Source: Macrostomum lignano
Lineage: Eukaryota
Assembly (NCBI GenBank): GCA_002269645.1
Contig: NIVC01001206.1
Coordinates: 109,850-173,849, forward strand
Direction of reading: 5' to 3'
Length of the DNA: 64,000 nucleotides
Below the pieces are notes generated by a model. The model did not search any database, had not been told where the DNA came from, and worked only from the letters and a program-made list of their open reading frames with translations. Both the position numbers and the translations under genes were made by a program. This document shows positions 18,363 through 64,000 of this stretch, piece after piece. Position 1 is the stretch's first letter. Every line of letters begins with the position of its first letter.

Positions 18363-18405
18363 ATAGTTTAGATAATTTATAGCAAACTATATATCTTATT
18401 TGTAG

Positions 18406-25446: not shown

Positions 25447-34101
<8,655 letters not shown>

Positions 34102-39390: not shown

Positions 39391-39557
39391 GATTATTCTG
39401 ACAATGCGATTGTTGCCTTTTGACGTCTGTTTTACCCCAATTCGCTTTCCTGGCGAAAACTGCATTGAACTCGGTGCGTTCGAGCAAGGCTGAAAATGGA
39501 AATGCCATAGACAATGCGATCTCTGAGCTTCTTGTTGATGGTCTTGTTAAAAATTAT

Positions 39558-40736: not shown

Positions 40737-40813
40737 TTAGGGTTAGGGTTAGGGCTAGGGTTAGGGTTAGGGCTAGGGTTAGGGTTAGGGCTAGGGTTAG
40801 GGTTGGGGTTAGG
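40737..40813 (+). repeat. Interstitial telomere-like repeat (TTAGGG with periodic CTAGGG)
   Basis: About 13 hexamers with an 18-bp TTAGGG-TTAGGG-CTAGGG period. Confidence 0.9.
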
Positions 40814-42159
40814 TGAAGTCTGATTAAAGTCTGGTGAAATGCGTCAACGTTGTTCAACTTAAAAACAAAACTTGTACGAACTTTTCTGTGCCTGCGTCCC
40901 CACCTGGTTCGTGAATTATCAATTTTAGACACGAATTCAAAATTTGCCAGCTCTGGGCCTTGCTTGACTTGTCTCGGTTCAGTTATTTTAAAAACCTGAC
41001 TCAGCTCAACAGAATTATGCAATCAGCCTGTCTGCCACTGACCCTCCTTTGCTGCTCCATGAATTGAGCTGAGAATGGCCCGCGGGGTCAGAGCTTGCGT
41101 CCGCCAGTGCGACTACAAGCTAGATTGGCAGGTGTCAATCAAAGCCTGTCAAATTCACCCCCCCCCCTAGAGCCGGGGCAGAGTGTTGACTTTCGCCAAG
41201 TGGGTCCGCCCCCCCCCCCGAAGGGGCAGACTTCTAGACACTATTCCATTGCTTATCCTATCCTTTTAACTGGCAAGACAGGGCTAGGAGGGCATGGACG
41301 TCTAGGAGCTCGATATCTGGACTGGAGTATCTGCGAGTCTGTGGCGCAAGAGTTTACCGCGGATCGTAAAGGTATCTTAGACGGATACCTATTTAGTAAG
41401 CGTTGGTTTTCCTATCCAGATCTCTAGTCCGAGAAGTCCCTGTCAGTGGATAGCCAACCAACCTCCTTTTCGCCTTTCTTAGGGTCTTGGCGAGAAGGGA
41501 ACCGCAGAGAGAGAGAGAGAAAGAATGACAGAAAGAAAAACACGAGCCTGAAAGCCTGGAGGGGGCCGGGGCCCGACCCTGCCTAGGCAAACAGTTCGCC
41601 ATATAGAGAAATAGTCTGGCCGCAATGCCCACTCGCTAGAATAGATCTAAACACAGGGCTCAGACAGTATACACACAGGCCCAGTCCCAGACTGATTGAT
41701 TGACTGGTGTGCCAGGGGCAGGTCCAAGTTATTCGCTCAATTCATAATTGGCCCAGTGTTGCTGGTTAACCAAGGGGCTCGGCAGACTTTGTCCATGTAC
41801 AGATGGATATCTCTGTGAGAGCTTGTCAATACTGTCTAATGCTCTCGATGAGACCCGGGATTGGGAAGGATTTTCTGCGGCCAGAGCCCCGGGCTATTTT
41901 GAACAAATTGTCATGCTTTTAGCCTGTCGAATTGCGACTGCTAAAATATGGAGATTTTTTCAGTAAACTGCCTACCCAGAGCTCAGAGAGACCGGCTGTG
42001 CCGGCTCCCATATCCCCCAGGAGGCAGTCGACTGGAAATGGGGAATGGGCGAGAGATGGGCGAGTGCTGCTCGAGTGGCTCTGAATACCGCAGCGATGCT
42101 CTGGGATTCCCGCTGGCTTTTATCAATAGAGACGCATTATCGAACAGCCTATGCATGCC

Positions 42160-42847
<688 letters not shown>

Positions 42848-43762
42848 GCAAAAGGCAGCAGTGTATTAGCAGTTATCCGAAGTGTAGAGTGTATAGCAAA
42901 AGCAATGGCCATTTCGAGGCCATATTGGGCAAAGATATTCGCCCAGCAGAGTTCGGTGCGGCTTTATTGAATAGAGTCAAGAGCAATGGCAGCAGCATAT
43001 TATCAAGAGCGAAAAGTTGGAGGGCCATGCGCTTTGCAACACACAGACGTGCTTTGTACACATGTACAGTGGCCCCGAAATATCTAGCAGCACTGCCAGT
43101 ACAATAAAAGCAAGTACAGTTTCAGCTGCAGCGGTTGACTTATAGAGGCTGAACATTTTGCGGCTGTCCCGCTATTTTAGGTACAAAAAAGTCCCACACG
43201 GCATTGCAGTGCCGCTGTTAAGCATGCATTCACAAGTTACTTCAAAATGTTTGCGTTCAGGATAGATAGATATAGAGGCTGTCTTAAACAGTCTGTCATT
43301 CTGTATTTACAGCATACTAACAGTTCTGAATTAGGTAAGTGGATGAGGTAGACAAGCAGTTAACAATGGAACGGGCCCAAAATTGCCCATCAGTAGCCAT
43401 AATGAGATCATGAAGTTCGGGGGGGGGGGCAATTCGAATCACGGATGACGTTTTATGACGAGCTGTAGACAGACAAGTTACAGTGAGCGTAAGCAAATTC
43501 AAGGGCAAAGAATGTTCCCATGGATACGAACCTACAGCTAAACACCTATAGCAACACTCGCTAGGCTTGTGCGCAAGGCAAGAACGGGAGCAGGTCTAGC
43601 AAAGCTTTAACTCGAGGGGAAATCTACCGAAAAAGCGTCGATAATCGGGGTTTGCAAAATCGTATCTAAGGGAAACACCGCGCGCTAAGATGCCGGTAGA
43701 ATTCGAACTGAGGCGATGAGAGAGGCGGGATCTGGGATCTGGGGAGGCTGTGTCGGTGGTCC

Positions 43763-46320
43763 CTACGAGAACACGCGGCGCACGAGGCATCTGTGCAGCT
43801 CGATTTGCTGTTCGCATCGCTGGCAGACCACCTTGATTGGATTGTAGCGCATTGCGCAATTGCACCAGTCGGTCTTGTAGTGATACTCAACCCGGTGATT
43901 CCGGTTGCCGCAGCACAGGTGAGTGCACGACCTGTGATTGCTGCGCGGCACAGTCACGTTGCAGAGCCGCTCGTCAACTCCGTAGTAGCCGGCCAGCTCG
44001 TTGCGCTGGCAGAAGTCCGGCGGCTGGTTGGTGTACACCAGCAGCTTCTTGCGCACCCGTTTTACTCGACGCTGCCGCTCGTCGTGGTAGAAAAGCTGCG
44101 ACGCCATGCGACGCCGGCCGATCCGACGCTTGTCTGTCGAGGATGCTGCTCCGGTGGACGAAGTCGAGACCGACGGCGACAGAAGCTGCTGAATGACAGC
44201 CGGCGGCAGGACGTGCTTGGATTTGACGAATAGCTTCTGCAGGTTGCTCTCGATGCGGCGCGAATGTCGGCGAAGGCCTTTGATGCAAATTCGCTTGGAG
44301 CAGGAGCCGGAGATGCCCAGACAGTTGCAGATGCTGATGCGACTGCGCTTAACCACCTGCAGATTGGTGCGTGTGCTTAGGTGCTCAGGTCCCTTTTCTG
44401 GCGTTTATTAAGCCTTCAAAGTTGTGCACTTTAGTGTGTTTGTTAGCTATAATCTACAATCTATAATCTGCTTGCGGCAACGCAAGCAGTCTTGAAAGTG
44501 CATAGATACATGTACGTACTTTTGGAACGTCAGGGGTGGGAAGTGGGTATCGTACCAAGCTTGCTTTCCCTTAGCCCTATTTCCCTTTCCCTTAGTAATT
44601 GTTCTTCCGTTAGTTTTTGCCCCCCCCCTTGTGCTGGCTGGCTGGTTGAGTAATCTTTGAACGAGCGCAACTCACAATGTGACCCGCCCGTCTGTTGTGA
44701 AAGTTGACTTTCTCGATAAAATTCATGTCCGGCGCGAATCCGCGCGAGTCGCTGAAGAACTGTCGAACCCTCTGGCTGGCCAGCGCGATGTTGTCGTCAC
44801 AGGTGGGCACATTCAGGTTACCGTACTTCTCGCTGATCTTCTCCGGGTTCAGCATCTTCAGCTGCTCTTTGCCCAGCGCGATGCTTCGACGCGGTCGCTC
44901 TCGACGATCGTTCGGTCGGCGGCGTCGATTCTGGCGCCGGTTTTTGCGCCGATTCTTGCGTCGATTCTGGCGCTGTTGGTCTTTGTTTCTTCGGCCGACT
45001 CGCTGACGGGGCGTCTGGTGGCACGGACAGTTGAGGCCGGGGACGCCGCGGCGACAGGCCATGACCAGCTCCTCGATGGCTTTGCTGACCGAGATGGCCC
45101 ATACAAAGGCCGCCTGCGGATATCCTGAGGAGGAGTTGGAATAGCAATTATGCGCTCATTTTTCAAAATTTTAGGCCTATGGTTGCTTGTATTTGCCAAT
45201 GGTTTCCTGTGGTTTTCGATGGTTTCCTGTGGTTTTCAATGGCTTTCTGTGGTTTCCAATGGTTTCTTGTAGTTTTCAATGGCTTTCTGTGGTTTCCAAT
45301 GGTTTCCTGTGGTTTTCAATGGCTTTCTGTGGTTTCCAATGGTTTCCTGTGGTTGCCAATGATTTTCTGTGGTTGCCAATGGTTTCCTGTGGCTTCCAAT
45401 GGTTCCTTGTGGTTGCTAATTGACTATTGTTTACCATTGGCTTATGGTTCACACCAGCTCACCCGAGTTAAGAAACGGCGCAGCAAAAGTGCAATTCCAG
45501 CGCTCGTTGCGAAACATCGATTGACAGATTTTGTAGCCATTGGACAGGCCGATGTGCACAAACTGGTCTGATAGGCTGGCCTCGCGACAGTAGGCCGCCT
45601 GGCGACTGCCCGGCACCGACAGCTCGCCGCCGCTGCCGCCGCCGACAACACTGATACCACTTCCAACATCGCCGACATCGCCACTGACCCTGCCGACACC
45701 ACCGACACCGCCGACACCACCGACACCGCCAACACCGCCGACACCGCCGACACCGCCGCCAACACCGCCAACACCGCCGACACCGCCGACACCGCCGACA
45801 ATGCCGCACATGGCCTCCCGACTTGTCGTGAGAAAGTGGAGAAAAGTTTGCGCATTGAATCGGTCGCTGTCGGAGTCGCTACCGACGCCGTCGCTGCCGC
45901 TGCTTGCCGGGTCTCGCCTGCCGGAGCTTTTGTAGCTGAATATGCTTCTGCGAATTCCGGAGTTTGGGAAGATTTTGTCTGATTCTTAAGTAAGTTTAAG
46001 CTCTGTTCTACCCAATACCGTTAATCCCTATACTCAGATCTACTTCCAAAGCACTATAAAATTTACCCTACATTGTAAATATATATGTATTATGCCATTA
46101 TCCCTACATTCTCAAACTCTTCCCAAATTCTATTTTAACTCTCCCTAAATTCTACTCACCCATCCGCATACGGACAAGCCGCCACGATCCAGCAGAGCAC
46201 CGCAACGCCAATCACGAAGTTGATTCGGCGGATTCGCCAGACATTCGAGTCTGTTGATCTCGTCGCCGATGCAGCCTCCGATCCGTCTGTATCGGCCGAG
46301 TCAGACTCCTGCGACTTCAT
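43763..46320 (-). CDS. wnt: Divergent Wnt-family ligand, left-arm copy, predicted 562 aa. Exons 46320-46160, 45947-45463, 45124-44676, 44356-43763
   Basis: CQSMFRNERWNC, AAFVWAIS..AC..G..C.C, CDDNI, NFHNRRAG, CNCLGISGSC, LLVY..PPDFC, LCCG and terminal Cys; consistent GT-AG phases. The exon 2 acceptor could alternatively lie 12 nt downstream. Subfamily not assignable by eye. Confidence 0.93.
45185..45420. repeat. 20-bp intronic minisatellite (tggtttcctgtggttttcaa)
   Basis: About 12 copies in Wnt intron 2; mirrored at ~58145-58380. Confidence 0.9.
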
Positions 46321-46545
46321 CGCGGTTGTCCCTGTCTAGAGATTGCTAATTGGAATCTTCTGAATCGAAGAGATCTCACCCAGACCAGAGAGAAGTGACG
46401 GCTTGACTGGGCCAGTGGTTTATCTGTGGAAGACATTGAAAGCCGGTACTGAAGTGGACAGGGGGGGGCGAACTCTCAGCCAATCAGAGCTTTCCTATGC
46501 GGTAATTGGCCCGGCATTGACCACACTGTTCTTATCTATCTGAAT

Positions 46546-46837
46546 CAGGGGTTGGCACACTCCGGCCCGCGGGCCACATGCTCTCTAGCCGGCCCTCGGA
46601 TCCTTTGAAACTTCCCATAGCAATCCGGCCCGCTCAAGGTTTGCGTCTCTTCTCTCTTCTCAGCTCTCTTCTCAGCTCTCTTCTCAGCTCTCTTCTCAGC
46701 TCTCTTCTCAGCTCTCTTCTCAGCTCTCTTCTCAGCTCTCTTCTCAGCTCTCTTCTCAGCTCTCTTCTCAGCTCTCTTCTCATTCGCTAGGTTCTTTACC
46801 TGCTCCAAAAATTAAAGAATAAACTTGCCGATCCCTG
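46546..46837 (+). mobile_element. hAT-like MITE with an internal 12-bp repeat (ctcttctcagct)
   Basis: Termini caggggttggca / tgccgatccctg; subterminal ccggcccgcgggcc; homologous to 33008 and 35020-35085; no TSD seen. Confidence 0.55.
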
Positions 46838-48180
46838 AGCCAAACGCACAAGAGCCTAGATCGCATCAAACGGCTGTCTCACTACTGTTAAATTGAATTC
46901 TCATAGCCATTTAGTGTCACTCATTGACCGCTATTATTGAGGAGTGGATTAATTAGCAAGCAGTACAACAGTGATTAACCTAACTAGCAAATCAATTAAC
47001 CAAAAAATCAAATTTTCTGACCTGTCAATCAAAATTAAGTCGAATCCATAGCGACCCCTATTTAGCTGGGGGATGAAAATCATTACCAGCAACAATAGCC
47101 GGGCTGCAATTAGCTCTTTTCCAGGAAAGTCAAAGACAATTAGTCCAGAATGGTCGGTCGCTACACTTTTCTTCGCGATAAACAGCAGCCTTGAGAGCCG
47201 TTGTCTGACCTGTCAAGAAAGTTTTTGGCAAATCTCCGGTTCTAATGACCCGGCGGTGCTGCTCCCCTGTCTGCTGCATTTTGTTGCGCACTTTAGAGAA
47301 AAATGGCAAAAGAAGACAGCAGCAGAAAACAGCCGACTGGACACCGAAAGAGGAATTGTTTCCTATGAAATTCCACACTCAACTCTGTAAGGGTCCTAAT
47401 CAGGCGAGAGTTTCGGGTATACAAAATTTTTCTCTGGCCCCAAGAGAAGCACTTTGGCCTCGCCTGTTGGTGGCTGCATTGGTGCACTAGAAACTCGAAT
47501 CTCTGGCCCCTCCATCGCCTTCTGTTTAGGATTAGGAGGACCATGGATTCCTTGGCCCACTGTGTGTGAGGTGGGGGGGGGTGCTGATGGGGTAAACGGA
47601 AAACAGCGCATCCGCAAAAATCTTGGCTTGGCCAACACGACCCCAGTCCCAACCCACCGACCCGCTCTCTGATAACCTCCTGTCAATCAGCATCACCTGT
47701 CAAAGCTGCGCTTCTGGGCACGGGAGGGTTGCATGTCGAGGACTAGTATAAGGGCTATGTTTGGGAGAATTTTCCCCCGCTATCGTGTCAGTGGCAGCGG
47801 GTGCAGAGTGAGAGATGCTTTCAGTCTTGGCTCCCTGTTCCCGGCAGTGCAGCGTGCTTGTGATTGATGGATTGGCCTAAGCATCTCCTGCTGATGGGTT
47901 GCATCACTCAGCTGAATAGGGGAGCGGCCTCAGCATCTCAGGGAGCCCCCGGTTCCACTGCAGCGATTCTCCACTTAACTCACTGGCTTGGCTGCTTCAT
48001 GGCCCACCACTTTACTAAACTGACCTGGTGACAAGGACACTTTCAACTAGAATATGGAGTGGAAACTCTTTGCCAAATAGCTGATGTTCAGTTATTAAAT
48101 GTATCTGTCTATGACAGTGCAGGTCTTTAAACATTTGCACCTCAAAGACTAGACGGACAATTCACCGTATGGCTGCGGGC

Positions 48181-48415
48181 CGGAGGAGGGGAGAGAGGAG
48201 AGGGAATAAAGAAGAGAGAAGAGAGATTGGAGATAGAAGATACGAGGGAATAAAGGAGAAGAGAGGAGACGAAAGGAAAGGAAAGATGAAAAGGGAGTGG
48301 AGAGAGGAGAGGAGGGAGATGCGAGAGAAGAGAGGAGAGAAGGGAGAGGAGAAGGGAGAGAATAGAGAGGAGAGAGGAGAGAAGAGAGAGGAGAGGAGAG
48401 AAATGAGAAATAGAT
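48181..48415. repeat. AG-rich low-complexity tract
   Basis: Polypurine run sharing gagggaataaa with the tract at ~21890. Confidence 0.8.
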
Positions 48416-48909
48416 GATTTTTTTGCGTTCTCAACTTAATATTGCTTAAGTGGGGGCCGAAGTCTGACTTGTGGGGGAGGAGTTTCTATTCCAGTTGCTG
48501 ATTCAAGGAGTCCTTGACCGGGGCTGGCATCTCGCAGGCCGTTAAATCTCCCGCACGTCAGATTGGAGGCGGCAGGCTGGGCGCAGCTTGATGGATGAGA
48601 TTGAAGTTCTCGGGCGCCCCGAAGCGCGCAAAATCGTGAATCTGGAGAGGGACTTGAAAGATAGAGTGAGAGAGGGGATTATCCTGTCATAAACTCCTCA
48701 TCCCATCAATCAGGATTTCTATCTCGTCTACACTTGCGCCATTTCAATTTACGAGTCGATGTTAATTCAAAGTCCTGAGCTCGAATCCAAGGGAGAAAGA
48801 AGTTTTGGAAGCATCGCTCATCATTTTCGAAGGGGATAATACGCTCCTCTATCAGACATTTTGGAGAAAATGGGGTTGGGGAAAAAGTTTTTGGGGAAAA
48901 AATTTAGTG

Positions 48910-49297
48910 GTTGTAGAACTCAGGGGTGTAGAACTCAGGGGTGTAGAACTCAGGGGTGTAGAACTCAGGGGTGTAGAACTCAGGGGTTTAGAACTCAGGG
49001 GTGTAGAACTCAGGGGTGTAGAACTCAGGGGTGTAGAACTCAGGGGTTTAGAACTCAGGGGTTTAGAACTCAGGGGTGTAGAACTCAGGGGTGTAGAACT
49101 CAGGGGTGTAGAACTCAGGGGTGTAGAACTCAGGGTTGTAGAACTCAGGGGTTTAGAACTCAGGGTTGTAGAACTCAGGGGTTTAGAACTCAGGGGTGTA
49201 GAACTCAGGGTTTAGAACTCAGGGTTGTAGAACTCAGGGGTGTAGAACTCAGGGGTTTAGAACTCAGGGGTGTAGAACTCAGGGGTTGTAAAATTCA
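48910..49297. repeat. 15-bp minisatellite (gtagaactcaggggt)
   Basis: About 25 copies; mirrored at ~54275-54648. Confidence 0.95.
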
Positions 49298-49817
49298 GGG
49301 GCTGTAATAGAATTCTTAAATTGTGAAGTCTTATTCAACATTTTAAAAAATTGATTCATTTTATTCGTTTAATTTTCTAAATTCACTACTGACTTCAATT
49401 AGTAAGTAGCACTTAATAGAATGGGGCACAATTAGTTACATTTTGAAAAAATCTGTCGCAAAAATTTACGAATTTGTGAACAGAGTTGCCGGAACACCTC
49501 AAGGTATTAAACAGAATGAGTGCAAACACAAACCCTTAGCTGCCTCAAACACAAAAACTGATTCAACAAGAGTTCGGTTATTTCCTATTTACTTTCTGAG
49601 CGGCTGTCTCCGGCTGACATATAAGACTGGCTGGTCCCGTCAGACCAAATCCGCTTGCAACTCCTTCACTGTCAGAGATACATGTAGAGCGAAATGTTCA
49701 GTCTTTCGAACTGCCGTTTTGTGAAGCTTTTGCTGGCTGTCTTGGTAACAGGCTGGAGCAGTGAAACCGCCTTGGTTCGGGGCGATGAGGTAAGTGCATT
49801 GTTTCCATATGCAAAAT

Positions 49818-50420
49818 AACCTATCCCACACAACCTATCCCACACAACCTATCCCACACAACCTATCCCACACAACCTATCCCACACAACCTATCCCACA
49901 CAACCTATCCCACACAACCTATCCCACACAACCTATCCCACACAACCTATCCCACACAACCTATCCCACACAACCTATCCCACACAACCTATCCCACACA
50001 ACCTATCCCACACAAACTATCCCACACAACCTATCCCACACAACCTATCCCACACAACCTATCCCACACAACCTATCCCACACAACCTATCCCACACAAC
50101 CTATCCCACACAACCTATCCCACACAACCTATCCCACACAACCTATCCCACACAACCTATCCCACACAACCTATCCCACACAACCTATCCCACACAACCT
50201 ATCCCACACAACCTATCCCACACAACCTATCCCACACAACCTATCCCACACAACCTATCCCACACAACCTATCCCACACAACCTATCCCACACAACCTAT
50301 CCCACACAACCTATCCCACACAACCTATCCCACACCCAATATCCCACACCCAATATCCCAAACCCAATATCCCACACCCAATATCCCACACCCAATATCC
50401 CACACCCAATATCCCAAACC
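49818..50420. repeat. 14-bp minisatellite (acctatcccacaca)
   Basis: About 42 copies; mirrored, with many single-base deletions, at ~53140-53745. Confidence 0.96.
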
Positions 50421-50919
50421 CATCGTTTCCAGCATATTTGGGTGGCACAAATAGACGGAGGCAGCCCAGTGGCTCAGTGGGTGGCGGACTCGCTCGGTTT
50501 AATTAACGAAGGAAAGGTGAGTCATTGATAACAAATCTGAGACACCTGACCGATAGAAAAATCTAATCGTTTATCGAGTTCTCCTACCCACTTAAATGCA
50601 ATTATGCAGATCCCCTACCTGAGGAACAAATTTATTTTCCGCTTGTCCGAGTCCGGCAACCAAAGCGTTGGGAGAAATTTCCTGCTGGCTCCGCTGCAGC
50701 TCAGGATTAACCGCAGCCTGCACACGCATCCGGATGTTGCTTGGGTCTCCTACCAGTCTGCTACTAAAAGGACTAAGAGAGACTTGCTGAAGCTGAGCGA
50801 GGTGAGGTCAGCTGATATGAGATGAGGGAAATCCGAAAAGTTCTGAAACCCACACGCAGGACCTTTAAAAATGCAGCAATTTAATCATGTTTTGATAATC
50901 ATAACACCTTTTCGAGATG

Positions 50920-51794
50920 CCATTTCAATGACGCCATTCCAATAACACCATTTTAATGACTACATTCCAATGACCCCATTCCAATGACCACATTTCCATG
51001 ACCCCATTTCAATGACCCCATTCCAATGACGACATTTCTATGACCCCATTTCAATGACCCCATTCCAATGACCACATTTCTATGACCCCATTTGAATGAC
51101 CCCCTTCCAATGACCACATTTCTATGACCCCATTTGAATGACCCCATTCCAATGACCACATTTCTATGACCCCATTTGAATGACCCCCTTCCAATGACCA
51201 CATTTCTATGACCCCATTTGAATGACCCCATTCCAATGATCCCATTCAATGATCCCATTCCAATGACCCCATTCAATAACCCCATTTTATGACCCCATTC
51301 CAATGACGACATTTCTATGACCCCATTCCAATGACCACATTTCCATGACCCCATTTCAATGACCCCATTCCAATGACGACATTTCTATGACCCATTCAAT
51401 GACCCCATTCCAATGACCACATTTCTATGACCCCATTTGAATGACCCCCTTCCAATGACCACATTTCTATGACCCCATTTGAATGACCCCATTCCAATGA
51501 CCACATTTCTATGACCCCATTTGAATGACCCCCTTCAATGACCACATTTCTATGACCCCATTTGAATGACCCCATTCCAATGATCCCATTCCAATGATCC
51601 CATTCCAATGACCCCATTCCAATGACCCCATTTCCAACGACCCCATTCCAATGATCCCATTCCAATGATTCCCATTCCAATGATCCCATTCCAATGACCC
51701 ATTCCAATGACCCCATTCCAATGACCCCATTCCAATGACCCCATTCCAATGATCCCATTCCAATGACCCCATTCAATCGACCCCAAAATCAATC
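50920..51794. repeat. ATTCC-containing ~14-bp satellite (caatgaccccattc) at the apex of the inverted duplication
   Basis: Array runs into the gap and resumes in the opposite orientation at 52507-52650. Confidence 0.92.
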
Positions 51795-52506
51795 NNNNNN
51801 NNNNNNNNNNNNNNNNNNNNNNNNNNNNNNNNNNNNNNNNNNNNNNNNNNNNNNNNNNNNNNNNNNNNNNNNNNNNNNNNNNNNNNNNNNNNNNNNNNNN
51901 NNNNNNNNNNNNNNNNNNNNNNNNNNNNNNNNNNNNNNNNNNNNNNNNNNNNNNNNNNNNNNNNNNNNNNNNNNNNNNNNNNNNNNNNNNNNNNNNNNNN
52001 NNNNNNNNNNNNNNNNNNNNNNNNNNNNNNNNNNNNNNNNNNNNNNNNNNNNNNNNNNNNNNNNNNNNNNNNNNNNNNNNNNNNNNNNNNNNNNNNNNNN
52101 NNNNNNNNNNNNNNNNNNNNNNNNNNNNNNNNNNNNNNNNNNNNNNNNNNNNNNNNNNNNNNNNNNNNNNNNNNNNNNNNNNNNNNNNNNNNNNNNNNNN
52201 NNNNNNNNNNNNNNNNNNNNNNNNNNNNNNNNNNNNNNNNNNNNNNNNNNNNNNNNNNNNNNNNNNNNNNNNNNNNNNNNNNNNNNNNNNNNNNNNNNNN
52301 NNNNNNNNNNNNNNNNNNNNNNNNNNNNNNNNNNNNNNNNNNNNNNNNNNNNNNNNNNNNNNNNNNNNNNNNNNNNNNNNNNNNNNNNNNNNNNNNNNNN
52401 NNNNNNNNNNNNNNNNNNNNNNNNNNNNNNNNNNNNNNNNNNNNNNNNNNNNNNNNNNNNNNNNNNNNNNNNNNNNNNNNNNNNNNNNNNNNNNNNNNNN
52501 NNNNNN
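51795..52506. other. Assembly gap (712 N)
   Basis: Run of N. Confidence 1.
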
Positions 52507-55500
52507 ATGGGGTCATTGAAATGGGGTCATAGAAATGTCGTCATTGGAATGGGGTCATTGAAATGGTCATGGAAATGTGGTCATTGGAATGGGGTCATTG
52601 GAATGTAGTCATTAAATGGTGTTATTGGAATGGCGTCATTGAAATGGCATCTCGAAAAGGTGTTATGATTATCAAAACATGATTAAATTGCTGCATTTTT
52701 AAAGGTCCTGCGTGTGGGTTTCAGAACTTTTCGGATTTCCCTCATCTCATATCAGCTGACCTCACCTCGCTCAGCTTCAGCAAGTCTCTCTTAGTCCTTT
52801 TAGTAGCAGACTGGTAGGAGACCCAAGCAACATCCGGATGCGTGTGCAGGCTGCGGTTAATCCTGAGCTGCAGCGGAGCCAGCAGAAATTTCTCCAACGC
52901 TTTGGTTGCCGGACTCGGACAAGCGGAAAATAAATTTGTTCCTCAGGTAGGGGATCTGCATAATTGCATTTAAGTGGGTAGGAGAACTCGATAAACGATT
53001 AGATTTTCTATCGGTCAGGTGTCTCAGATTTGTTATCAATGACTCACCTTTCCTTCGTTAATTAAACGAGCGAGTCCGCCACCCACTGAGCCACTGGGCT
53101 GCCTCCGTCTATTTGTGCCACCCAAATATGCTGGAAACGATGGGGTTTGGGATATTGGGTGTGGGATATTGGGTGTGGATATTGGCGTGTGGGATATTGG
53201 TTTGGGATATTGGGTGTGGGATATTGGGTGTGGATAGGTTGTGTGGGATAGTGTTGTGTGGGATAGGTTGTGTGGGATAGGTTGCTGTGGGATAGGTTGT
53301 GTGGGATAGGTTGTGTGGGATAGGTTGTGTGGGATAGGTTGTGTGGGATAGGTTGTGTGGGATAGGTTGTGTGGGATAGGTTGTGTGGGATAGGTTGTGT
53401 GGGATAGGTTGTGTGTGGATAGGTTGTGTGGGATAGGTTGTGTGGGATAGGTTGTGTGGGATAGGTTTGTGTGGATAGGTTGTGTGGGATAGCGTTGTGT
53501 GGGATAGGTTGTGTGGGATAGGTTGTGTGGGGATAGGTTGTGTGGGATAGGTTGTGTGGATAGGTTGTGTGGATAGGTTGTGTGGATAGGTTGTGTGGGA
53601 TAGGTTGTTGGGATAGTGTTGTGTGGATAGGTTGTGTGGGATAGGTTGTGTGGGATAGGTTGTGTGGGATAGGTTGTGTGGGATAGGTTGTGTGGATAGG
53701 TTGTGTTGGATAGGTTGTGTGGGATAGGTGTGTTGGTGATAGGTTATTTTGCATATGGAAACAATGCACTTACCTCATCGCCCCGAACCAAGCGCGGTTT
53801 CACTGCTCCAGCCTGTTACCAAGACAGCCAGCAAAAGCTTCACAAAACGGCAGTTCGAAAGACTGAACATTTCGCTCTACATGTATCTCTGACAGTGAAG
53901 GAGTTGCAAGCGGATTTGGTCTGACGGGACCAGCCAGTCTTATATGTCAGCCGGAGACAGCCGCTCAGAAAGTAAATAGGAAATAACCGAACTCTTGTTG
54001 AATCAGTTTTTGTGTTTGAGGCAGCTAAGGGTTTGTGTTTGCACTCATTCTGTTTAATACCTTGAGGTGTTCCGGCAACTCTGTTCACAAATTCGTAAAT
54101 TTTTGCGACAGATTTTTTCAAAATGTAACTAATTGTGCCCCATTCTATTAAGTGCTACTTACTAATTGAAGTCAGTAGTGAATTTAGAAAATTAACGAAT
54201 AAAATGAATCAATTTTTTAAAATGTTGAATAAGACTTCACAATTTAAGAATTCTATTACAGCCCTGAATTTTACAACCCCTGAGTTCTACACCCTGAGTT
54301 CTAAACCCCTGAGTTCTACACCCCTGAGTTCTACAACCCTGAGTTCTAAACCCTGAGTTCTACACCCCTGAGTTCTAAACCCCTGAGTTCTACAACCCTG
54401 AGTTCTAAACCCCTGAGTTCTACAACCCTGAGTTCTACACCCCTGAGTTCTACACCCTGAGTTCTACACCCCTGAGTTCTACACCCCTGAGTTCTAAACC
54501 CCTGAGTTCTAAACCCCTGAGTTCTACACCCCTGAGTTCTACACCCCTGAGTTCTACACCCCTGAGTTCTAAACCCCTGAGTTCTACACCCTGAGTTCTA
54601 CACCCCTGAGTTCTACACCCCTGAGTTCTACACCCCTGAGTTCTACAACCACTAAATTTTTTCCCCAAAAACTTTTTCCCCAACCCCATTTTCTCCAAAA
54701 TGTCTGATAGAGGAGCGTATTATCCCCTTCGAAAATGATGAGCGATGCTTCCAAAACTTTCTTTCTCCTTGGATTCGAGCTCAGGACTTTGAATTAACAT
54801 CGACTCGTAAATTGAAATGGCGCAAGTGTAGACGAGATAGAAATCCTGATTGATGGGATGAGGAGTTTATGACAGGATAATCCCCTCTCTCACTCTATCT
54901 TTCAAGTCCCTCTCCAGATTCACGATTTTGCGCGCTTCGGGGCGCCCGAGAACTTCAATCTCATCCATCAAGCTGCGCCCAGCCTGCCGCCTCCAATCTG
55001 ACGTGCGGGAGATTTAACGGCCTGCGAGATGCCAGCCCCGGTCAAGGACTCCTTGAATCAGCAACTGGAATAGAAACTCCTCCCCCACAAGTCAGACTTC
55101 GGCCCCCACTTAAGCAATATTAAGTTGAGAACGCAAAAAAATCATCTATTTCTCATTTCTCTCCTCTCCTCTCTCTTCTCTCCTCTCTCCTCTCTATTCT
55201 CTCCCTTCTCCTCTCCCTTCTCTCCTCTCTTCTCTCGCATCTCCCTCCTCTCCTCTCTCCACTCCCTTTTCATCTTTCCTTTCCTTTCGTCTCCTCTCTT
55301 CTCCTTTATTCCCTCGTATCTTCTATCTCCAATCTCTCTTCTCTCTTCTTTATTCCCTCTCCTCTCTCCCCTCCTCCGGCCCGCAGCCATACGGTGAATT
55401 GTCCGTCTAGTCTTTGAGGTGCAAATGTTTAAAGACCTGCACTGTCATAGACAGATACATTTAATAACTGAACATCAGCTATTTGGCAAAGAGTTTCCAC

Positions 55501-56721
55501 TCCATATTCTAGTTGAAAGTGTCCTTGTCACCAGGTCAGTTTAGTAAAGTGGTGGGCCATGAAGCAGCCAAGCCAGTGAGTTAAGTGGAGAATCGCTGCA
55601 GTGGAACCGGCGGGCTCCCTGAGATGCTGAGGCCGCTCCCCTATTCAGCTGAGTGATGCAACCATCAGCAGGAGATGCTTAGGCCAATCCATCAATCACA
55701 AGCACGCTGCACTGCCGGGAACAGGGAGCCAAGACTGAAAGCATCTCTCACTCTGCACCGCTGCCACTGACACGATAGCGGGGGAAAATTCTCCCAAACA
55801 TAGCCCTTATACTAGTCCTCGACATGCAACCCTCCCGTGCCCAGAAGCGCAGCTTTGACAGGTGATGCTGATTGACAGGAGGTTATCAGAGAGCGGGTCG
55901 GTGGGTTGGGACTGGGGTCGTGTTGGCCAAGCCAAGATTTTTGCGGATGCGCTGTTTTCCGTTTTACCCCATCAGCACCCCCCCCCCACCTCACACACAG
56001 TGGGCCAAGGAATCCATGGTCCTCCTAATCCTAAACAGAAGGCGATGGAGGGGCCAGAGATTCGAGTTTCTAGTGCACCAATGCAGCCACCAACAGGCGA
56101 GGCCAAAGTGCTTCTCTTGGGGCCAGAGAAAAATTTTGTATACCCGAAACTCTCGCCTGATTAGGACCCTTACAGAGTTGAGTGTGGAATTTCATAGGAA
56201 ACAATTCCTCTTTCGGTGTCCAGTCGGCTGTTTTCTGCTGCTGTCTTCTTTTGCCATTTTTCTCTAAAGTGCGCAACAAAATGCAGCAGACAGGGGAGCA
56301 GCACCGCCGGGTCATTAGAACGGAGATTTGCCAAAAACTTTCTTGACAGGTCAGACAACGGCTCTCAAGGCTGCTGTTTATCGCGAAGAAAAGTGTAGCG
56401 ACCGACCATTCTGGACTAATTGTCTTTGACTTTCCTGGAAAAGAGCTAATTGCAGCCCGGCTATTGTTGCTGGTAATGATTTTCATCCCCCAGCTAAATA
56501 GGGGTCGCTATGGATTCGACTTAATTTTGATTGACAGGTCAGAAAATTTGATTTTTTGGTTAATTGATTTGCTAGTTAGGTTAATCACTGTTGTACTGCT
56601 TGCTAATTAATCCACTCCTCAATAATAGCGGTCAATGAGTGACACTAAATGGCTATGAGAATTCAATTTAACAGTAGTGAGACAGCCGTTTGATGCGATC
56701 TAGGCTCTTGTGCGTTTGGCT

Positions 56722-57017
56722 CAGGATCGGCAAGTTTATTCTTTAATTTTTTGGAGCAGGTAAAGAACCTAGCGAATGAGAAGAGAGCTGAGAAGAGAGC
56801 TGAGAAGAGAGCTGAGAAGAGAGCTGAGAAGAGAGCTGAGAAGAGAGCTGAGAAGAGAGCTGAGAAGAGAGCTGAGAAGAGAGCTGAGAGAGAGCTGAGA
56901 AGAGAGCTGAGAAGAGACGCAAACCTTGAGCGGGCCGGATTGCTATGGGAAGTTTCAAAGGATCCGAGGGCCGGCTAGAGAGCATGTGGCCCGCGGGCCG
57001 GAGTGTGCCAACCCCTG
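56722..57017 (-). mobile_element. Mirror copy of the hAT-like MITE at 46546-46837
   Basis: Reverse complement of the left-arm element. Confidence 0.55.
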
Positions 57018-57242
57018 ATTCAGATAGATAAGAACAGTGTGGTCAATGCCGGGCCAATTACCGCATAGGAAAGCTCTGATTGGCTGAGAGTTCGCCCCCC
57101 CCTGTCCACTTCAGTACCGGCTTTCAATGTCTTCCACAGATAAACCACTGGCCCAGTCAAGCCGTCACTTCTCTCTGGTCTGGGTGAGATCTCTTCGATT
57201 CAGAAGATTCCAATTAGCAATCTCTAGACAGGGACAACCGCG

Positions 57243-59801
57243 ATGAAGTCGCAGGAGTCTGACTCGGCCGATACAGACGGATCGGAGGCTGCATCGGCGA
57301 CGAGATCAACAGACTCGAATGTCTGGCGAATCCGCCGAATCAACTTCGTGATTGGCATTGCGGTGCTCTGCTGGATCGTGGCGGCTTGTCCGTATGCGGA
57401 TGGGTGAGTAGAATTTAGGGAGAGTTAAAATAGAATTTGGGAAGAGTTTGAGAATGTAGGGATAATGGCATAATACATATATATTTACAATGTAGGGTAA
57501 ATTTTATAGTGCTTTGGAAGTAGATCTGAGTATAGGGATTAACGGTATTGGGTAGAACAGAGCTTAAACTTACTTAAGAATCAGACAAAATCTTCCCAAA
57601 CTCCGGAATTCGCAGAAGCATATTCAGCTACAAAAGCTCCGGCAGGCGAGACCCGGCAAGCAGCGGCAGCGACGGCGTCGGTAGCGACTCCGACAGCGAC
57701 CGATTCAATGCGCAAACTTTTCTCCACTTTCTCACGACAAGTCGGGAGGCCATGTGCGGCATTGTCGGCGGTGTCGGCGGTGTCGGCGGTGTTGGCGGTG
57801 TTGGCGGCGGTGTCGGCGGTGTCGGCGGTGTTGGCGGTGTCGGTGGTGTCGGCGGTGTCGGTGGTGTCGGCAGGGTCAGTGGCGATGTCGGCGATGTTGG
57901 AAGTGGTATCAGTGTTGTCGGCGGCGGCAGCGGCGGCGAGCTGTCGGTGCCGGGCAGTCGCCAGGCGGCCTACTGTCGCGAGGCCAGCCTATCAGACCAG
58001 TTTGTGCACATCGGCCTGTCCAATGGCTACAAAATCTGTCAATCGATGTTTCGCAACGAGCGCTGGAATTGCACTTTTGCTGCGCCGTTTCTTAACTCGG
58101 GTGAGCTGGTGTGAACCATAAGCCAATGGTAAACAATAGTCAATTAGCAACCACAAGGAACCATTGGAAGCCACAGGAAACCATTGGCAACCACAGAAAA
58201 TCATTGGCAACCACAGGAAACCATTGGAAACCACAGAAAGCCATTGAAAACCACAGGAAACCATTGGAAACCACAGAAAGCCATTGAAAACTACAAGAAA
58301 CCATTGGAAACCACAGAAAGCCATTGAAAACCACAGGAAACCATCGAAAACCACAGGAAACCATTGGCAAATACAAGCAACCATAGGCCTAAAATTTCGA
58401 AAAATGAGCGCATAATTGCTATTCCAACTCCTCCTCAGGATATCCGCAGGCGGCCTTTGTATGGGCCATCTCGGTCAGCAAAGCCATCGAGGAGCTGGTC
58501 ATGGCCTGTCGCCGCGGCGTCCCCGGCCTCAACTGTCCGTGCCACCAGACGCCCCGTCAGCGAGTCGGCCGAAGAAACAAAGACCAACAGCGCCAGAATC
58601 GACGCAAGAATCGGCGCAAAAACCGGCGCCAGAATCGACGCCGCCGACCGAACGATCGTCGAGAGCGACCGCGTCGAAGCATCGCGCTGGGCAAAGAGCA
58701 GCTGAAGATGCTGAACCCGGAGAAGATCAGCGAGAAGTACGGTAACCTGAATGTGCCCACCTGTGACGACAACATCGCGCTGGCCAGCCAGAGGGTTCGA
58801 CAGTTCTTCAGCGACTCGCGCGGATTCGCGCCGGACATGAATTTTATCGAGAAAGTCAACTTTCACAACAGACGGGCGGGTCACATTGTGAGTTGCGCTC
58901 GTTCAAAGATTACTCAACCAGCCAGCCAGCACAAGGGGGGGGGGCAAAAACTAACGGAAGAACAATTACTAAGGGGAAAGGGAAATAGGGCTAAGGGAAA
59001 GCAAGCTTGGTACGATACCCACTTCCCACCCTGACGTTCCAAAAGTACGTACATGTATCTATGCACTTTCAAGACTGCTTGCGTTGCCGCAAGCAGATTA
59101 TAGATTGTAGATTATAGCTAACAAACACACTAAAGTGCACAACTTTGAAGGCTTAATAAACGCCAGAAAAGGGACCTGAGCACCTAAGCACACGCACCAA
59201 TCTGCAGGTGGTTAAGCGCAGTCGCATCAGCATCTGCAACTGTCTGGGCATCTCCGGCTCCTGCTCCAAGCGAATTTGCATCAAAGGCCTTCGCCGACAT
59301 TCGCGCCGCATCGAGAGCAACCTGCAGAAGCTATTCGTCAAATCCAAGCACGTCCTGCCGCCGGCTGTCATTCAGCAGCTTCTGTCGCCGTCGGTCTCGA
59401 CTTCGTCCACCGGAGCAGCATCCTCGACAGACAAGCGTCGGATCGGCCGGCGTCGCATGGCGTCGCAGCTTTTCTACCACGACGAGCGGCAGCGTCGAGT
59501 AAAACGGGTGCGCAAGAAGCTGCTGGTGTACACCAACCAGCCGCCGGACTTCTGCCAGCGCAACGAGCTGGCCGGCTACTACGGAGTTGACGAGCGGCTC
59601 TGCAACGTGACTGTGCCGCGCAGCAATCACAGGTCGTGCACTCACCTGTGCTGCGGCAACCGGAATCACCGGGTTGAGTATCACTACAAGACCGACTGGT
59701 GCAATTGCGCAATGCGCTACAATCCAATCAAGGTGGTCTGCCAGCGATGCGAACAGCAAATCGAGCTGCACAGATGCCTCGTGCGCCGCGTGTTCTCGTA
59801 G
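57243..59801 (+). CDS. wnt: Divergent Wnt-family ligand, right-arm copy. Exons 57243-57403, 57616-58100, 58439-58887, 59208-59801
   Basis: Same motifs and exon lengths (161, 485, 449, 594 nt) as the left copy; one Val/Ile difference seen in exon 1. Confidence 0.93.
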
Positions 59802-60807
59802 GGACCACCGACACAGCCTCCCCAGATCCCAGATCCCGCCTCTCTCATCGCCTCAGTTCGAATTCTACCGGCATCTTAGCGCGCGGTGTTTCCCTTAGAT
59901 ACGATTTTGCAAACCCCGATTATCGACGCTTTTTCGGTAGATTTCCCCTCGAGTTAAAGCTTTGCTAGACCTGCTCCCGTTCTTGCCTTGCGCACAAGCC
60001 TAGCGAGTGTTGCTATAGGTGTTTAGCTGTAGGTTCGTATCCATGGGAACATTCTTTGCCCTTGAATTTGCTTACGCTCACTGTAACTTGTCTGTCTACA
60101 GCTCGTCATAAAACGTCATCCGTGATTCGAATTGCCCCCCCCCCGAACTTCATGATCTCATTATGGCTACTGATGGGCAATTTTGGGCCCGTTCCATTGT
60201 TAACTGCTTGTCTACCTCATCCACTTACCTAATTCAGAACTGTTAGTATGCTGTAAATACAGAATGACAGACTGTTTAAGACAGCCTCTATATCTATCTA
60301 TCCTGAACGCAAACATTTTGAAGTAACTTGTGAATGCATGCTTAACAGCGGCACTGCAATGCCGTGTGGGACTTTTTTGTACCTAAAATAGCGGGACAGC
60401 CGCAAAATGTTCAGCCTCTATAAGTCAACCGCTGCAGCTGAAACTGTACTTGCTTTTATTGTACTGGCAGTGCTGCTAGATATTTCGGGGCCACTGTACA
60501 TGTGTACAAAGCACGTCTGTGTGTTGCAAAGCGCATGGCCCTCCAACTTTTCGCTCTTGATAATATGCTGCTGCCATTGCTCTTGACTCTATTCAATAAA
60601 GCCGCACCGAACTCTGCTGGGCGAATATCTTTGCCCAATATGGCCTCGAAATGGCCATTGCTTTTGCTATACACTCTACACTTCGGATAACTGCTAATAC
60701 ACTGCTGCCTTTTGCCTATCTACCTACCTACCTACCTACCTACCTACCTACCTACCTACCTACCTACCTACCTACCTACCTACCTACCTACCTACCTACC
60801 TACCTAC

Positions 60808-61000
<193 letters not shown>

Positions 61001-61001
61001 G

Positions 61002-61070
<69 letters not shown>

Positions 61071-61074
61071 CATG

Positions 61075-61212
<138 letters not shown>

Positions 61213-62578
61213 CATGTATCTATCTATGGCATGCATAGGCTGTTCGATAATGCGTCTCTATTGATAAAAGCCAGCGGGAATCCCAGAGCATCGCTGCGGT
61301 ATTCAGAGCCACTCGAGCAGCACTCGCCCATCTCTCGCCCATTCCCCATTTCCAGTCGACTGCCTCCTGGGGGATATGGGAGCCGGCACAGCCGGTCTCT
61401 CTGAGCTCTGGGTAGGCAGTTTACTGAAAAAATCTCCATATTTTAGCAGTCGCAATTCGACAGGCTAAAAGCATGACAATTTGTTCAAAATAGCCCGGGG
61501 CTCTGGCCGCAGAAAATCCTTCCCAATCCCGGGTCTCATCGAGAGCATTAGACAGTATTGACAAGCTCTCACAGAGATATCCATCTGTACATGGACAAAG
61601 TCTGCCGAGCCCCTTGGTTAACCAGCAACACTGGGCCAATTATGAATTGAGCGAATAACTTGGACCTGCCCCTGGCACACCAGTCAATCAATCAGTCTGG
61701 GACTGGGCCTGTGTGTATACTGTCTGAGCCCTGTGTTTAGATCTATTCTAGCGAGTGGGCATTGCGGCCAGACTATTTCTCTATATGGCGAACTGTTTGC
61801 CTAGGCAGGGTCGGGCCCCGGCCCCTCCAGGCTTTCAGGCTCGTGTTTTTCTTTCTGTCATTCTTTCTCTCTCTCTCTCTCTCCGGTTCCCTTCTCGCCA
61901 AGACCCTAAGAAAGGCGAAAAGGAGGTTGGTTGGCTATCCACTGACAGGGACTTCTCGGACTAGAGATCTGGATAGGAAAACCAACGCTTACTAAATAGG
62001 TATCCGTCTAAGATACCTTTACGATCCGCGGTAAACTCTTGCGCCACAGACTCGCAGATACTCCAGTCCAGATATCGAGCTCCTAGACGTCCATGCCCTC
62101 CTAGCCTTGTCTTGCCAGTTAAAAGGATAGGATAAGCAATGGAATAGTGTCTAGAAGTCTGCCCCTTCGGGGGGGGGGGGCGGACCCACTCGGCGAAAGT
62201 CAACACTCTGCCCCGGCTCTAGGGGGGGGGGGGGTGAATTTGACAGGCTTTGATTGACACCTGCCAATCTAGCTTGTAGTCGCACTGGCGGACGTAAGCT
62301 CTGACCCCGCGGGCCATTCTCAGCTCAATTCATGGAGCAGCAAAGGAGGGTCAGTGGCAGACAGGCTGATTGCATAATTCTGTTGAGCTGAGTCAGGTTT
62401 TTAAAATAACTGAACCGAGACAAGTCAAGCAAGGCCCAGAGCTGGCAAATTTTGAATTCGTGTCTAAAATTGATAATTCACGAACCAGGTGGGGACGCAG
62501 GCACAGAAAAGTTCGTACAAGTTTTGTTTTTAAGTTGAACAACGTTGACGCATTTCACCAGACTTTAATCAGACTTCA

Positions 62579-62681
62579 CCTAACCCCAACCCTAACCCTA
62601 GCCCTAACCCTAACCCTAGCCCTAACCCTAACCCTAGCCCTAACCCTAACCCTAGCCCTAACCCTAACCCTAGCCCTAACC
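62579..62681 (-). repeat. Mirror interstitial telomere-like repeat (CCCTAA/CCCTAG)
   Basis: Five CCCTAG variants versus three CTAGGG in the left arm. Confidence 0.9.
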
Positions 62682-63224
62682 ATAAGATACGATTTCACTA
62701 AATAGACTAAATCCATTTGTAAAATTTCTAAACTTCCTAATTCTGATATAAGACGAATGCAAAAAAGACAAAATCCCCATTTAAACTACTGCAAGTAGGT
62801 TTAGCGAATATAGCTGGAGAATCTCAAAAACTGTGCCGGATATGCCGGCTGACTATAATTGGCATTGACAGCTAGTCACTGGCCGAACATGGAAATCCCT
62901 TCATTTTATTTCTCCCTTCCCAGCATGATTTGTTCCCCATCGCGTCTAAGCTGAAACCTCGCCATTCTCGTGGGGATTCCAGAAGTTTCCATAGCTGGTC
63001 AAGAACTAGGGAAGCCACGCAGCGGGGATGCGATGGGCGCTGTCAATCAACTTCACTTTCCTCCTTCGTGTCTGATGCATCCACAGAATCTGCTGTTTAT
63101 CTGAAATTCTCCATTGTTGGAATTTTCCCGATATTATTGCCAGATCAAACATCAAGTTAAAACCTTATCATAACTCATTCCAATTACAAAAGTTTGTTGT
63201 TAGTCTGAAACAAATCAATAATTT

Positions 63225-63863
63225 CAGGGACTTCTACGATATAGATTTACCATAGAATAGAAAAGAGGATCCTACCCCTAGGTCCTAAAATCCTCCGTTT
63301 TCTATTCTCCGCCCCTTCAACCCTCTGTTTTCCACTCTCCGCCCCTCCAATCCTCCGTTTTCTATTCTCCGCCCCTCCAATCCTCCGTTTTCTATTCTCC
63401 GCCCCTCCAATCCTCCGTTTTCTATTCTCCGCCCCTCCAATCCTCCGTTTTCTATTCTCCGCCCCTTCAATCCTCCGTTTTCTATTTTCCGCCCCTTCAA
63501 TCCTCCGTTTTCTACTCTCCGCCCCTTCAATCCTCTGTTTTCTACTCTCCGCCCCTTCAACCCTCCACCCTTTCAATCCTCTGCCCCTTCAACCCTCCAC
63601 CCTTTCAATCCTCTGCCCCTTCAACCCTCCGCCCCTTCAATCCTCTGCCCCTTCAACCCTCCACCCTTTCAATCCTCTGCCCCTTCAACCCTCCACCCTT
63701 TCAATCCTCTGCCCCTTCAACCCTCCACCCTTTCAATCCTCTGCCCCTTCAACCCTCCGACCCTTCAATCCTCTGCCCCTTCAACCCTCCGCCCCTTCAA
63801 TCCTCCGCTGCCCTTCTGCGGTCTTTTCTATTCTCTGGTAAGTTTATATCACAGAAGTCCCTG
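63225..63863. mobile_element. Mirror copy of the 42-bp-TIR element at 39558-40197
   Basis: Reverse complement of the left-arm element including the TSD. Confidence 0.8.
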
Positions 63864-64000
63864 ATAATTTTTAACAAGACCATCAACAAGAAGCTCAGAG
63901 ATCGCATTGTCTATGGCATTTCCATTTTCAGCCTTGCTCGAACGCACCGAGTTCAATGCAGTTTTCGCCAGGAAAGCGAATTGGGGTAAAACAGACGTCA

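Follow-up and report, generated by a model that had tools for sequence, protein, structure and literature searches.

A Macrostomum lignano Wnt without the Trp-Cys-Cys fingertip, predicted to keep a remodelled index finger

Does a Wnt that has lost the tip of its index finger still act as a ligand of Frizzled receptors, or has it become something else? The question is raised by a gene in a 64,000-nt stretch of the genome of the flatworm Macrostomum lignano (assembly GCA_002269645.1, contig NIVC01001206.1, positions 109,850 to 173,849 of the forward strand). We refer to the whole stretch as the window, and coordinates below are positions within it. The gene in question, here called the window gene, is a Wnt gene on the plus strand at 57243-59801, and a first-pass annotation had described its product as lacking the fingertip that contacts Frizzled. 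The fingertip Trp and its tandem disulfide are treated as a constant of Wnt-Frizzled recognition, and solved complexes, surrogate agonists and Frizzled inhibitors are interpreted through them. Conserved natural ligands without the tip but with the lipid site would be ready-made tests of how much of the finger contact (site 2) is needed and of how specificity is re-coded. Our analysis reveals an intact gene whose finger is predicted to be remodelled. We favour, with reasonable though far from full confidence, the reading that it encodes a functional, secreted, lipid-modified ligand that still grips the cysteine-rich domain (CRD) of its receptor by thumb and finger, through re-coded interfaces and with an altered receptor preference.

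Index finger and thumb of the window Wnt

The spliced product of the window gene matches the Pfam wnt family (PF00110) with 157.7 bits (E=6.4e-46; curated gathering cut-off, 20.3 bits) over profile positions 7-304 of 305. The Wnt family is built on a framework of 22-24 invariantly spaced Cys. The three Wnt-domain exons of the window gene encode 21 Cys, each of which occupies an invariant Cys column when 21 Wnt sequences are aligned; the tandem fingertip disulfide is missing from this framework, and so is the first canonical Cys at its expected position. The residues listed in the first-pass annotation (the C-terminus, VPTC, CI, CNCLG and SGSC) are all present on the plus strand. Its estimate of about 22 other Cys was right in that many are retained, but the Wnt-domain exons hold 21. 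An AlphaFold model of the protein, computed from an alignment of 42 sequences, predicts a normal Wnt fold with a predicted local distance difference test score (pLDDT) of 82.9 and a predicted template-modelling score of 0.78. The top Foldseek matches to this model are Wnt3, Wnt7a and XWnt8 (E 1e-13 to 1e-14; target-normalised template-modelling score, TM, 0.71-0.77), and the closest solved structure by sequence is Wnt5a.

The fingertip itself is where the window gene departs most visibly from the family. Positions 59697-59777 of the plus strand encode W-C-N-C-A-M-R-Y-N-P-I-K-V-V-C-Q-R-C-E-Q-Q-I-E-L-H-R-C, followed by a stop codon at 59799-59801, and the C-terminus, DWCNCAMRYNPIKVVCQRC...HRC, contains neither the fingertip Trp nor the vicinal Cys pair. 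The finger lies within the following feature.

59700-59750, plus strand: index-finger hairpin, C-N-C-AMRYNPIKVV-C-Q-R-C (from sequence, alignment columns and AlphaFold)

The frame Cys of the finger motif C-x-C-x-F-x-W-C-C-x-V-x-C-x-x-C and its canonical Val (59733-59735) are present, and the motif as a whole is absent. A Y-N-P-I tip (59718-59729) occupies the place expected for W-C-C: Phe is replaced by Met, Trp by Tyr (Ser in the M. lignano relative P0004, introduced below), and the vicinal Cys by Asn and Ile, which flank an inserted Pro. From its C-x-C border to its C-x-x-C border the loop comprises 10 residues versus the canonical 9. The joint loss of the vicinal Cys leaves no other Cys without a partner. 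The vicinal disulfide of Wnt3a induces a tight turn at the fingertip, and F331, W333, C335 and V337 make the site-2 contacts (PMC4068752). The model of the window protein places strands at residues 358-375 and 378-394, joined by a two-residue turn at Asn376-Pro377 and predicted with a pLDDT of ~94-97, and the tip retains some hydrophobic character (M, Y, P, I, V). This confident hairpin suggests that the finger is remodelled rather than missing, with an Asn-Pro turn in place of the disulfide closure. Thus, the earlier description of a Wnt lacking its fingertip holds for the loss of W-C-C but not for the finger, whose hairpin is kept in the model.

The thumb of the window gene, CNCLGISGSC (59235-59264), runs C-N-C-L-G-I-S-G-S-C-S-K-R-I-C-I. 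The acyl-acceptor Ser codon (59253-59255) is retained together with the Ser-Gly pair and both Cys, and the residues after the thumb are C-I instead of C-W (59277-59282). Kumar et al. list K204, L208, S209, G210 and W218 of Wnt3a as contacts of the lipid-bearing thumb (site 1) and report that S209 and G210 are essential (PMC4068752). The corresponding residues in the window gene are N (H in P0004), I, S, G and I; the two essential positions are thus present, as ISGSC. The acylated Ser resides in a PROSITE-type WNT motif, C-[KR]-C-H-G-[LIVMT]-S-G-x-C (PMC12371475), single substitutions in which lower secretion and activity without abolishing them (summarised in PMC12371475). The Ser-Gly pair is intact but the window thumb departs from the motif at two positions; as single substitutions do not abolish secretion and activity, acylation of the window protein is likely but not assured.

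Two further departures lie upstream. VPTC (58753-58764) stands where WGGC is expected, which the first-pass annotation took for a replacement. VPTC is indeed there, but MAFFT places a conserved K-Y-G, five residues upstream of it, under the canonical W-G, so that WGGC is better described as split by an insert. In addition, the CCGRGY of canonical Wnts reads CCGNRNH in the window gene, with one extra residue after C-C-G.

Macrostomum relatives, gene model and genomic setting

Word-indexed searches gave few matches for the divergent window protein. An exhaustive profile search of 1.84 billion representatives returned matches above 110 bits from M. lignano only, namely P0001 (a cluster of Mlig015547g1 and Mlig003032g1), P0004 (PAA90069.1, Mlig029070g1, in a cluster with Mlig033752g1 and Mlig007946g1 as further members), along with models of these genes that carry frameshifts. 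The next matches are ordinary Wnts at 92 bits or less. The ten best of these are mixed, eight being named Wnt2b, Wnt6, Wnt7b, Wnt16 or Wnt11b and two unnamed; this mixture, together with Wnt5a as the best structure, points to no affinity with any canonical subfamily. The window gene, P0001 and P0004 are all intact and 45-51% identical in pairwise comparison. All three have [VIL]P[TS]CDDN with the conserved K-Y-G five residues upstream, C[NH]CLG[IV]SGSC, C-I-[KR]-G after the thumb, the extra residue after C-C-G, and WC[NR]C.M..NPI[KR]V.C..C. In a crude neighbour-joining (NJ) tree they form a clade in 100% of bootstraps, with the window gene sister to P0001 in 78%, and this clade stands apart from representatives of Wnt2, 4, 6, 7, 9, 11 and 16. 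Macrostomorph-specific, multi-copy Wnts, designated WntM, have been described in M. cliftonense and M. hystrix and could not be placed in any of the 13 bilaterian Wnt subfamilies (Gasiorowski, Tripathi, Bavafaye Haghighi and Rink, bioRxiv 10.64898/2026.07.29.741434). The window gene most likely belongs to the WntM group, judging from its sequence. The text of that preprint contains no residue-level description; the terms cysteine, finger and palmitoleo- are absent from it.

Substitution rates were estimated by the Nei-Gojobori method between the window gene and P0004 (locus L001). With every aligned codon included, nonsynonymous divergence (dN) is 0.57 and synonymous divergence (dS) 1.20; for the conserved blocks the respective values are 0.26 and 1.21, a ratio of ~0.2 that is rough as a value and clear in direction. 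Different codons are used at 78 of the 176 identical residues, including the Asn and Pro of the tip. The window gene is under purifying selection and is not decaying, because diverged intact relatives share its oddities, intron phases match, and dN is lower than dS. The earlier description of an intact Wnt, for which a decaying locus had been named as a refutation, is therefore upheld: relatives at 45-51% identity keep the N-P-I tip, and dN/dS is low in the conserved blocks.

The window gene comprises four exons on the plus strand, separated by GT-AG introns of fitting phases.

57243-57403, plus strand: putative exon 1; ATG, a 32-residue polar N-region, then hydrophobic INFVIGIAVLCWIVAACPYA (from a scan of open reading frame, donor and phase)
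57742-58100, plus strand: exon 2; (Gly-Val)n tract, then the Wnt domain start LSVPGSRQAAYC...ICQSMFRNERWNC...FLNSG
58439-58887, plus strand: exon 3; YPQAAFVWAI...ACRRGVPGLNCPC, basic low-complexity insert, KYGNLNVPTCDDN, NFHNRRAGHI
59208-59801, plus strand: exon 4, 594 nt; thumb CNCLGISGSCSKRICI (59235-59282), linker with insert, C-terminal domain, stop at 59799-59801

The 5' part of the resulting 520-residue model, from exon 1 into the beginning of exon 2, is predicted. Putative exon 1 ends in phase 2 at 57403, where TGG is followed by the donor GTGAGT, and INFVIGIAVLCWIVAACPYA, residues 33-52, is a candidate signal peptide or signal anchor. The N-terminus of P0001 is laid out alike, with a long N-region followed by a hydrophobic segment, and exon 1 of P0004 encodes a signal peptide followed by a phase-2 intron, the plan seen in putative exon 1. 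A tblastn search of the window with the N-terminus of P0001 did not find the 5' exon. Within exon 2, which also reads ...YCREASLSDQFVHIGLSNGYKICQSMFRNERWNC...FLNSG up to 58100, the acceptor at 57740-57741 was placed from a polypyrimidine tract and phase 2; the 3' end, 58100 followed by GTGAGC, is in phase 1 and matches the exon end at the P0004 locus of M. lignano (FLNTG, then G). A microsatellite with a 9-nt unit, (TGTCGGCGG)x11.8 at 57763-57871, lies inside the inferred exon 2 and codes for the (Gly-Val)n tract, which would sit between signal peptide and Wnt domain. Read in an alternative frame, the same microsatellite follows an ATG at 57708 and gives a hydrophobic tract of Ala, Val and Ser. 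Intron 2 consists mostly of a 20/80-nt tandem array (58149-58384). Exon 3 is bordered by an acceptor AG before GA and by a donor GTGAGT after ATT in phase 0, and P0001 aligns to it by tblastn. A 12-nt repeat, (CGCCAGAATCGA)x4.3 at 58591-58642, encodes the basic, RRKN-rich insert of exon 3 between C-x-C and the WGGC equivalent. Exon 4 is supported by its open reading frame, its acceptor site, alignment to Wnt5a and Wnt7a, and the Pfam match that extends to profile position 304 of 305. The P0004 locus (L001, NIVC01000127.1) also has four exons, and its last two introns fall at the same residues and in the same phases (1, 0) as those of the window gene.

A second copy of the gene lies on the opposite strand, across a run of N.

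43763-46320, minus strand: mirror gene copy, with exons at ~46160-46320, 45463-45821, 44676-45124 and 43763-44356
51795-52506, no strand: 712-N run at the centre of an inverted repeat, an assembly gap or masked stretch

The inverted repeat measures at least 11.5 kb per arm (39421-51063 versus 52507-64000), and its arms are 99.2% identical. The right arm begins directly after the N run at 52507 and runs on past the right-hand limit of the window. No difference separates the arms within the three Wnt-domain exons (100% identity); five differences are spread across the 2.6-kb gene: an A/G change giving Ile39Val in putative exon 1 and four in introns, a C/T change and three homopolymer indels in intron 3. 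This divergence fits alleles, haplotigs or a very recent duplication, and the palindrome may be real and recent or a scaffolding artefact of haplotigs joined head to head. The first-pass annotation had stressed that the frame is intact and identical in both copies, citing 43763-43905 (on the minus strand) as the second. Intact frame and identical Wnt exons are confirmed. However, the copies are the arms of a near-identical palindrome at a gap, so their identity carries no information on constraint, and their use as independent evidence was rejected.

Elsewhere in the window, several long open reading frames with cyclic-nucleotide-binding domains (PF00027, E=2e-16 and 1e-5) lie on the minus strand at 36548-39465 and are probably one multi-exon gene adjoining the left palindrome arm. 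On the plus strand, an open reading frame at 25447-25968 opens with a sequence resembling a signal peptide and matches the hormone receptor domain PF02793 weakly, at 21.7 bits, which falls short of the curated cut-off; it may be exon 1 of a class B G-protein-coupled receptor. Long simple and minisatellite arrays are unusually abundant (9660-14421, 17378-18420, 21810-23483, 26000-28700, 41983-42912 and 60651-61404) and create spurious long open reading frames in several frames, for example (CTAT)x129 at 60716-61227.

Losses of Trp-Cys-Cys in other Wnts and the function of the window Wnt

Fingers were surveyed in the best 150 profile matches plus the window protein, 24 of which have no scorable finger because they are fragments or frameshifted models. 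The Cys-Cys pair is kept in 115 of the 127 scorable fingers and missing from 12, three of which are the Macrostomum genes; among the 148 top matches besides P0001 and P0004, 115 have it, 9 do not and 24 are unscorable. Other matches without Cys-Cys include the "Wnt-6-like" protein of the tunicate Clavelina, two sponge Wnts, a beetle protein that is Wnt7-like, one protein from an ostracod and one from a trematode. The Clavelina lepadiformis protein (P0013, XP_076822536.1) has the finger CNCKLQKSLNLVCQEC, without W-C-C, and a Cys at the position of the acylated Ser (CKCHGLCGSC).

Following up the trematode match revealed a Wnt11-type clade across Neodermata (P0127, P0158-P0169 and P0172-P0176; for example, E. 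multilocularis CDS41425.1 and F. hepatica THD25676.1) in which the fingertip Trp and the vicinal Cys pair are missing. The trematode members, from Schistosoma (S. mansoni A0A3Q0KQY3), Trichobilharzia, Heterobilharzia, Fasciola, Fasciolopsis, Echinostoma, Calicophoron, Clonorchis and Dicrocoelium, have fingers of the form CNCRM[GA][EN]GFKV.CDEC. Complete cestode sequences from Spirometra, Mesocestoides and Hymenolepis diminuta have C[NR]C[IV]MQ[PQ]NFKVHCQTC. The Echinococcus granulosus representative retains the second half of the finger (VHCQTC), and its 90%-identity cluster also holds, by cluster membership only, proteins of E. multilocularis, Taenia and Hydatigera. The nearest named relatives of the clade are canonical Wnt11 proteins with W-C-C, with which it nests in the tree. 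Expression of the "posterior" genes wnt11a and wnt11b was described by Koziol et al. 2016 (PMC4778295), and the Wnt11 relatives and tree position identify the neodermatan clade as one of the em-wnt11a/em-wnt11b type genes.

Are the two flatworm losses one event? WntM-type genes score 56-67 bits against a hidden Markov model (HMM) of the neodermatan clade versus 91-146 bits against those of canonical groups, and the two clades are paired in just 20% of bootstraps of the crude NJ tree. The losses thus look convergent, and those in Macrostomum and in the neodermatan clade are probably independent. Orthology, suggested by the common pattern C-N-C-x-M...[FI]-K-V-x-C, was considered and rejected on the group HMM scores and the bootstrapped NJ tree. 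The first-pass annotation had proposed looking for a subfamily that shares the loss, and the search was fruitful: the Macrostomum trio share the N-P-I tip, and the neodermatan clade is also without W-C-C. Its concern that a described subfamily might carry the substitution and signal normally is borne out by half, in that the neodermatan Wnt11-type genes (PMC4778295) share the loss. Neither flatworm loss was found mentioned in the flatworm Wnt literature searched, and a literature search on natural Wnts without the tandem disulfide returned mutational and structural papers only. It is tempting to speculate that flatworms replaced the near-universal Wnt Trp-Cys-Cys fingertip at least twice independently, once by an Asn-Pro turn in the WntM-type genes of Macrostomum and once in the Wnt11-type genes of all parasitic flatworms, with loss of the thumb-flanking Trp in both; we put this forward tentatively and regard it as somewhat doubtful. 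A parallel loss in the Wnt11-type genes of schistosomes, liver flukes and tapeworms hints at an interface particular to flatworms.

How might the window Wnt act? According to the reading we prefer, an Asn-Pro turn in a loop longer by one residue would replace the disulfide-forced tight turn at the tip of the finger. The protein would still be lipid-modified and would clamp the cysteine-rich domain of a receptor between thumb and finger, and the reshaped interface would shift receptor preference, for example toward a particular Frizzled paralogue. That the protein is acylated and secreted, binds a receptor and has shifted in specificity is predicted here from sequence. An experimental guide is Wnt3a, whose W333A and C335A mutants bind Fz8 less well and give a weaker reporter signal in cells, yet have the effect of wild type in zebrafish embryos (Kumar et al. 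2014, PMC4068752). The wild type-like behavior of these mutants, together with retention of the essential Ser-Gly, is compatible with signalling by the window Wnt. The first-pass annotation had suggested either rewired receptor specificity or a site-1-only competitive antagonist. Rewired specificity is plausible and gains weight from the changed equivalents of the site-1 protein contacts K204 and W218 of Wnt3a. In an antagonist or decoy, the lipid-bearing thumb would fill the groove of Frizzled without the altered finger being able to close the clamp, and canonical Wnts would be blocked. Such a molecule is favoured by data on Wnt3a, in which W333A leaves almost no Fz8-CRD pull-down and C335A no reporter activity in HEK293T cells (PMC4068752), and by the kept acyl-acceptor Ser-Gly. 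The same mutants, however, are wild type-like in embryos; the equivalents of the site-1 contacts K204 and W218 are also changed, which would weaken a pure site-1 binder; and three genes separated by a dS of ~1.2 have all retained the N-P-I-[KR]-V tip, a retention unexpected for a functionless surface. We found no positive support for the antagonist and consider it quite unlikely.

Somewhat less improbable, though still well behind the preferred reading, is a ligand that has moved from Frizzled to another class of receptor, for example Ror, PTK7, the WIF domain of Ryk/Derailed or a receptor peculiar to the lineage. In its favour, the two surfaces that contact Frizzled have changed together, the clade has no canonical affinity (its best general matches mix Wnt2b, 6, 7b, 16 and 11b at 92 bits or less), and receptor and sFRP repertoires are reported to be expanded in early-branching flatworms (bioRxiv 10.64898/2026.07.29.741434). 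Yet the sequence points to no specific alternative receptor, and a lipid-bearing Ser on a two-pronged Wnt fold is precisely what binding to a CRD requires. Pseudogene decay, or an error in assembly or annotation, would account for the satellite-rich locus in a palindrome across an assembly gap, for the coding microsatellite that interrupts the N-terminus and for the degenerate Wnt motif. It is nevertheless very improbable indeed, as the exons are all open, the introns are GT-AG with phases matching the M. lignano paralogue, the framework Cys are all kept, dN is lower than dS, and the same substitutions occur in two other intact genes with M. lignano protein records at NCBI.

Several points weigh against a functional, receptor-clamping ligand. 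The window thumb fails the WNT motif, with Asn for Lys/Arg and Leu for His, and acylation by Porcupine is thus not assured. The 5' end of the gene is inferred, and no Cys stands where the first canonical one (LC..L.GL) is expected; the predicted exon 2 holds a candidate substitute ahead of its Gly-Val tract. The alignment given to AlphaFold contains mostly canonical Wnts and may bias the model toward a hairpin. Conservation of the tip loop in the three-way comparison is 5 of 10 residues versus a background of 34% (P=0.23), figures on which extra constraint on the fingertip was rejected. The dN/dS values suffer from a dS near saturation (pS 0.60), and the ligand function of the window gene and its M. 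lignano relatives is a prediction.

The finding has no bearing on a long-standing open problem, and the WntM clade is already named. If the ligands are active, flatworms would have a Wnt-receptor interface unlike that in every solved Wnt-Frizzled complex, and the receptors they pair with may have evolved along with them or may belong to a class other than Frizzled. Because M. lignano is transgenic and tractable to RNA interference, the question is directly testable.

Comparison with known Wnts

The model of the window protein has the fold of canonical Wnts (XWnt8 with Fz8 CRD, 4F0A; human Wnt3 with Fz8, 6AHY; Wnt7a; Wnt5a), with TM scores of 0.71-0.77. Like them, the window gene has the thumb Ser-Gly, the 21 framework Cys, the C-x-C/C-x-x-C frame of the finger and its conserved Val. 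Unlike them, it has an Asn-Pro turn in a loop extended by one residue in place of W-C-C, N or H for K and L for H in the WNT motif, I for W after the thumb, an insert in WGGC, CCGNRNH, and long basic low-complexity inserts.

Among natural Wnts, WntM is a close parallel, being likewise a Macrostomum-restricted, multi-copy clade without subfamily affinity. The neodermatan Wnt11-type genes resemble the window gene in having lost the Trp after the thumb (C-F) and in having Met for the finger Phe; they differ in keeping CKCHGVSGSC, W[AS]GC and the canonical loop length. Wnt3a W333A, C335A and F331A/W333A are laboratory analogues in which the tip Trp is removed or the tandem disulfide is broken. These are single or double changes in a canonical ligand, which cost it its activity in a cell reporter but not in zebrafish, whereas the change in the window gene is old and conserved and goes together with altered site-1 residues. 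WntD of Drosophila (Wnt inhibitor of Dorsal) has no acylated Ser (site 1), and its structure (PDB 4KRR) is a distant match to the model of the window protein. WntD is a natural Wnt that gave up one of the two devices for binding Frizzled, and the window gene presents the mirror case, with site 1 kept and site 2 altered.

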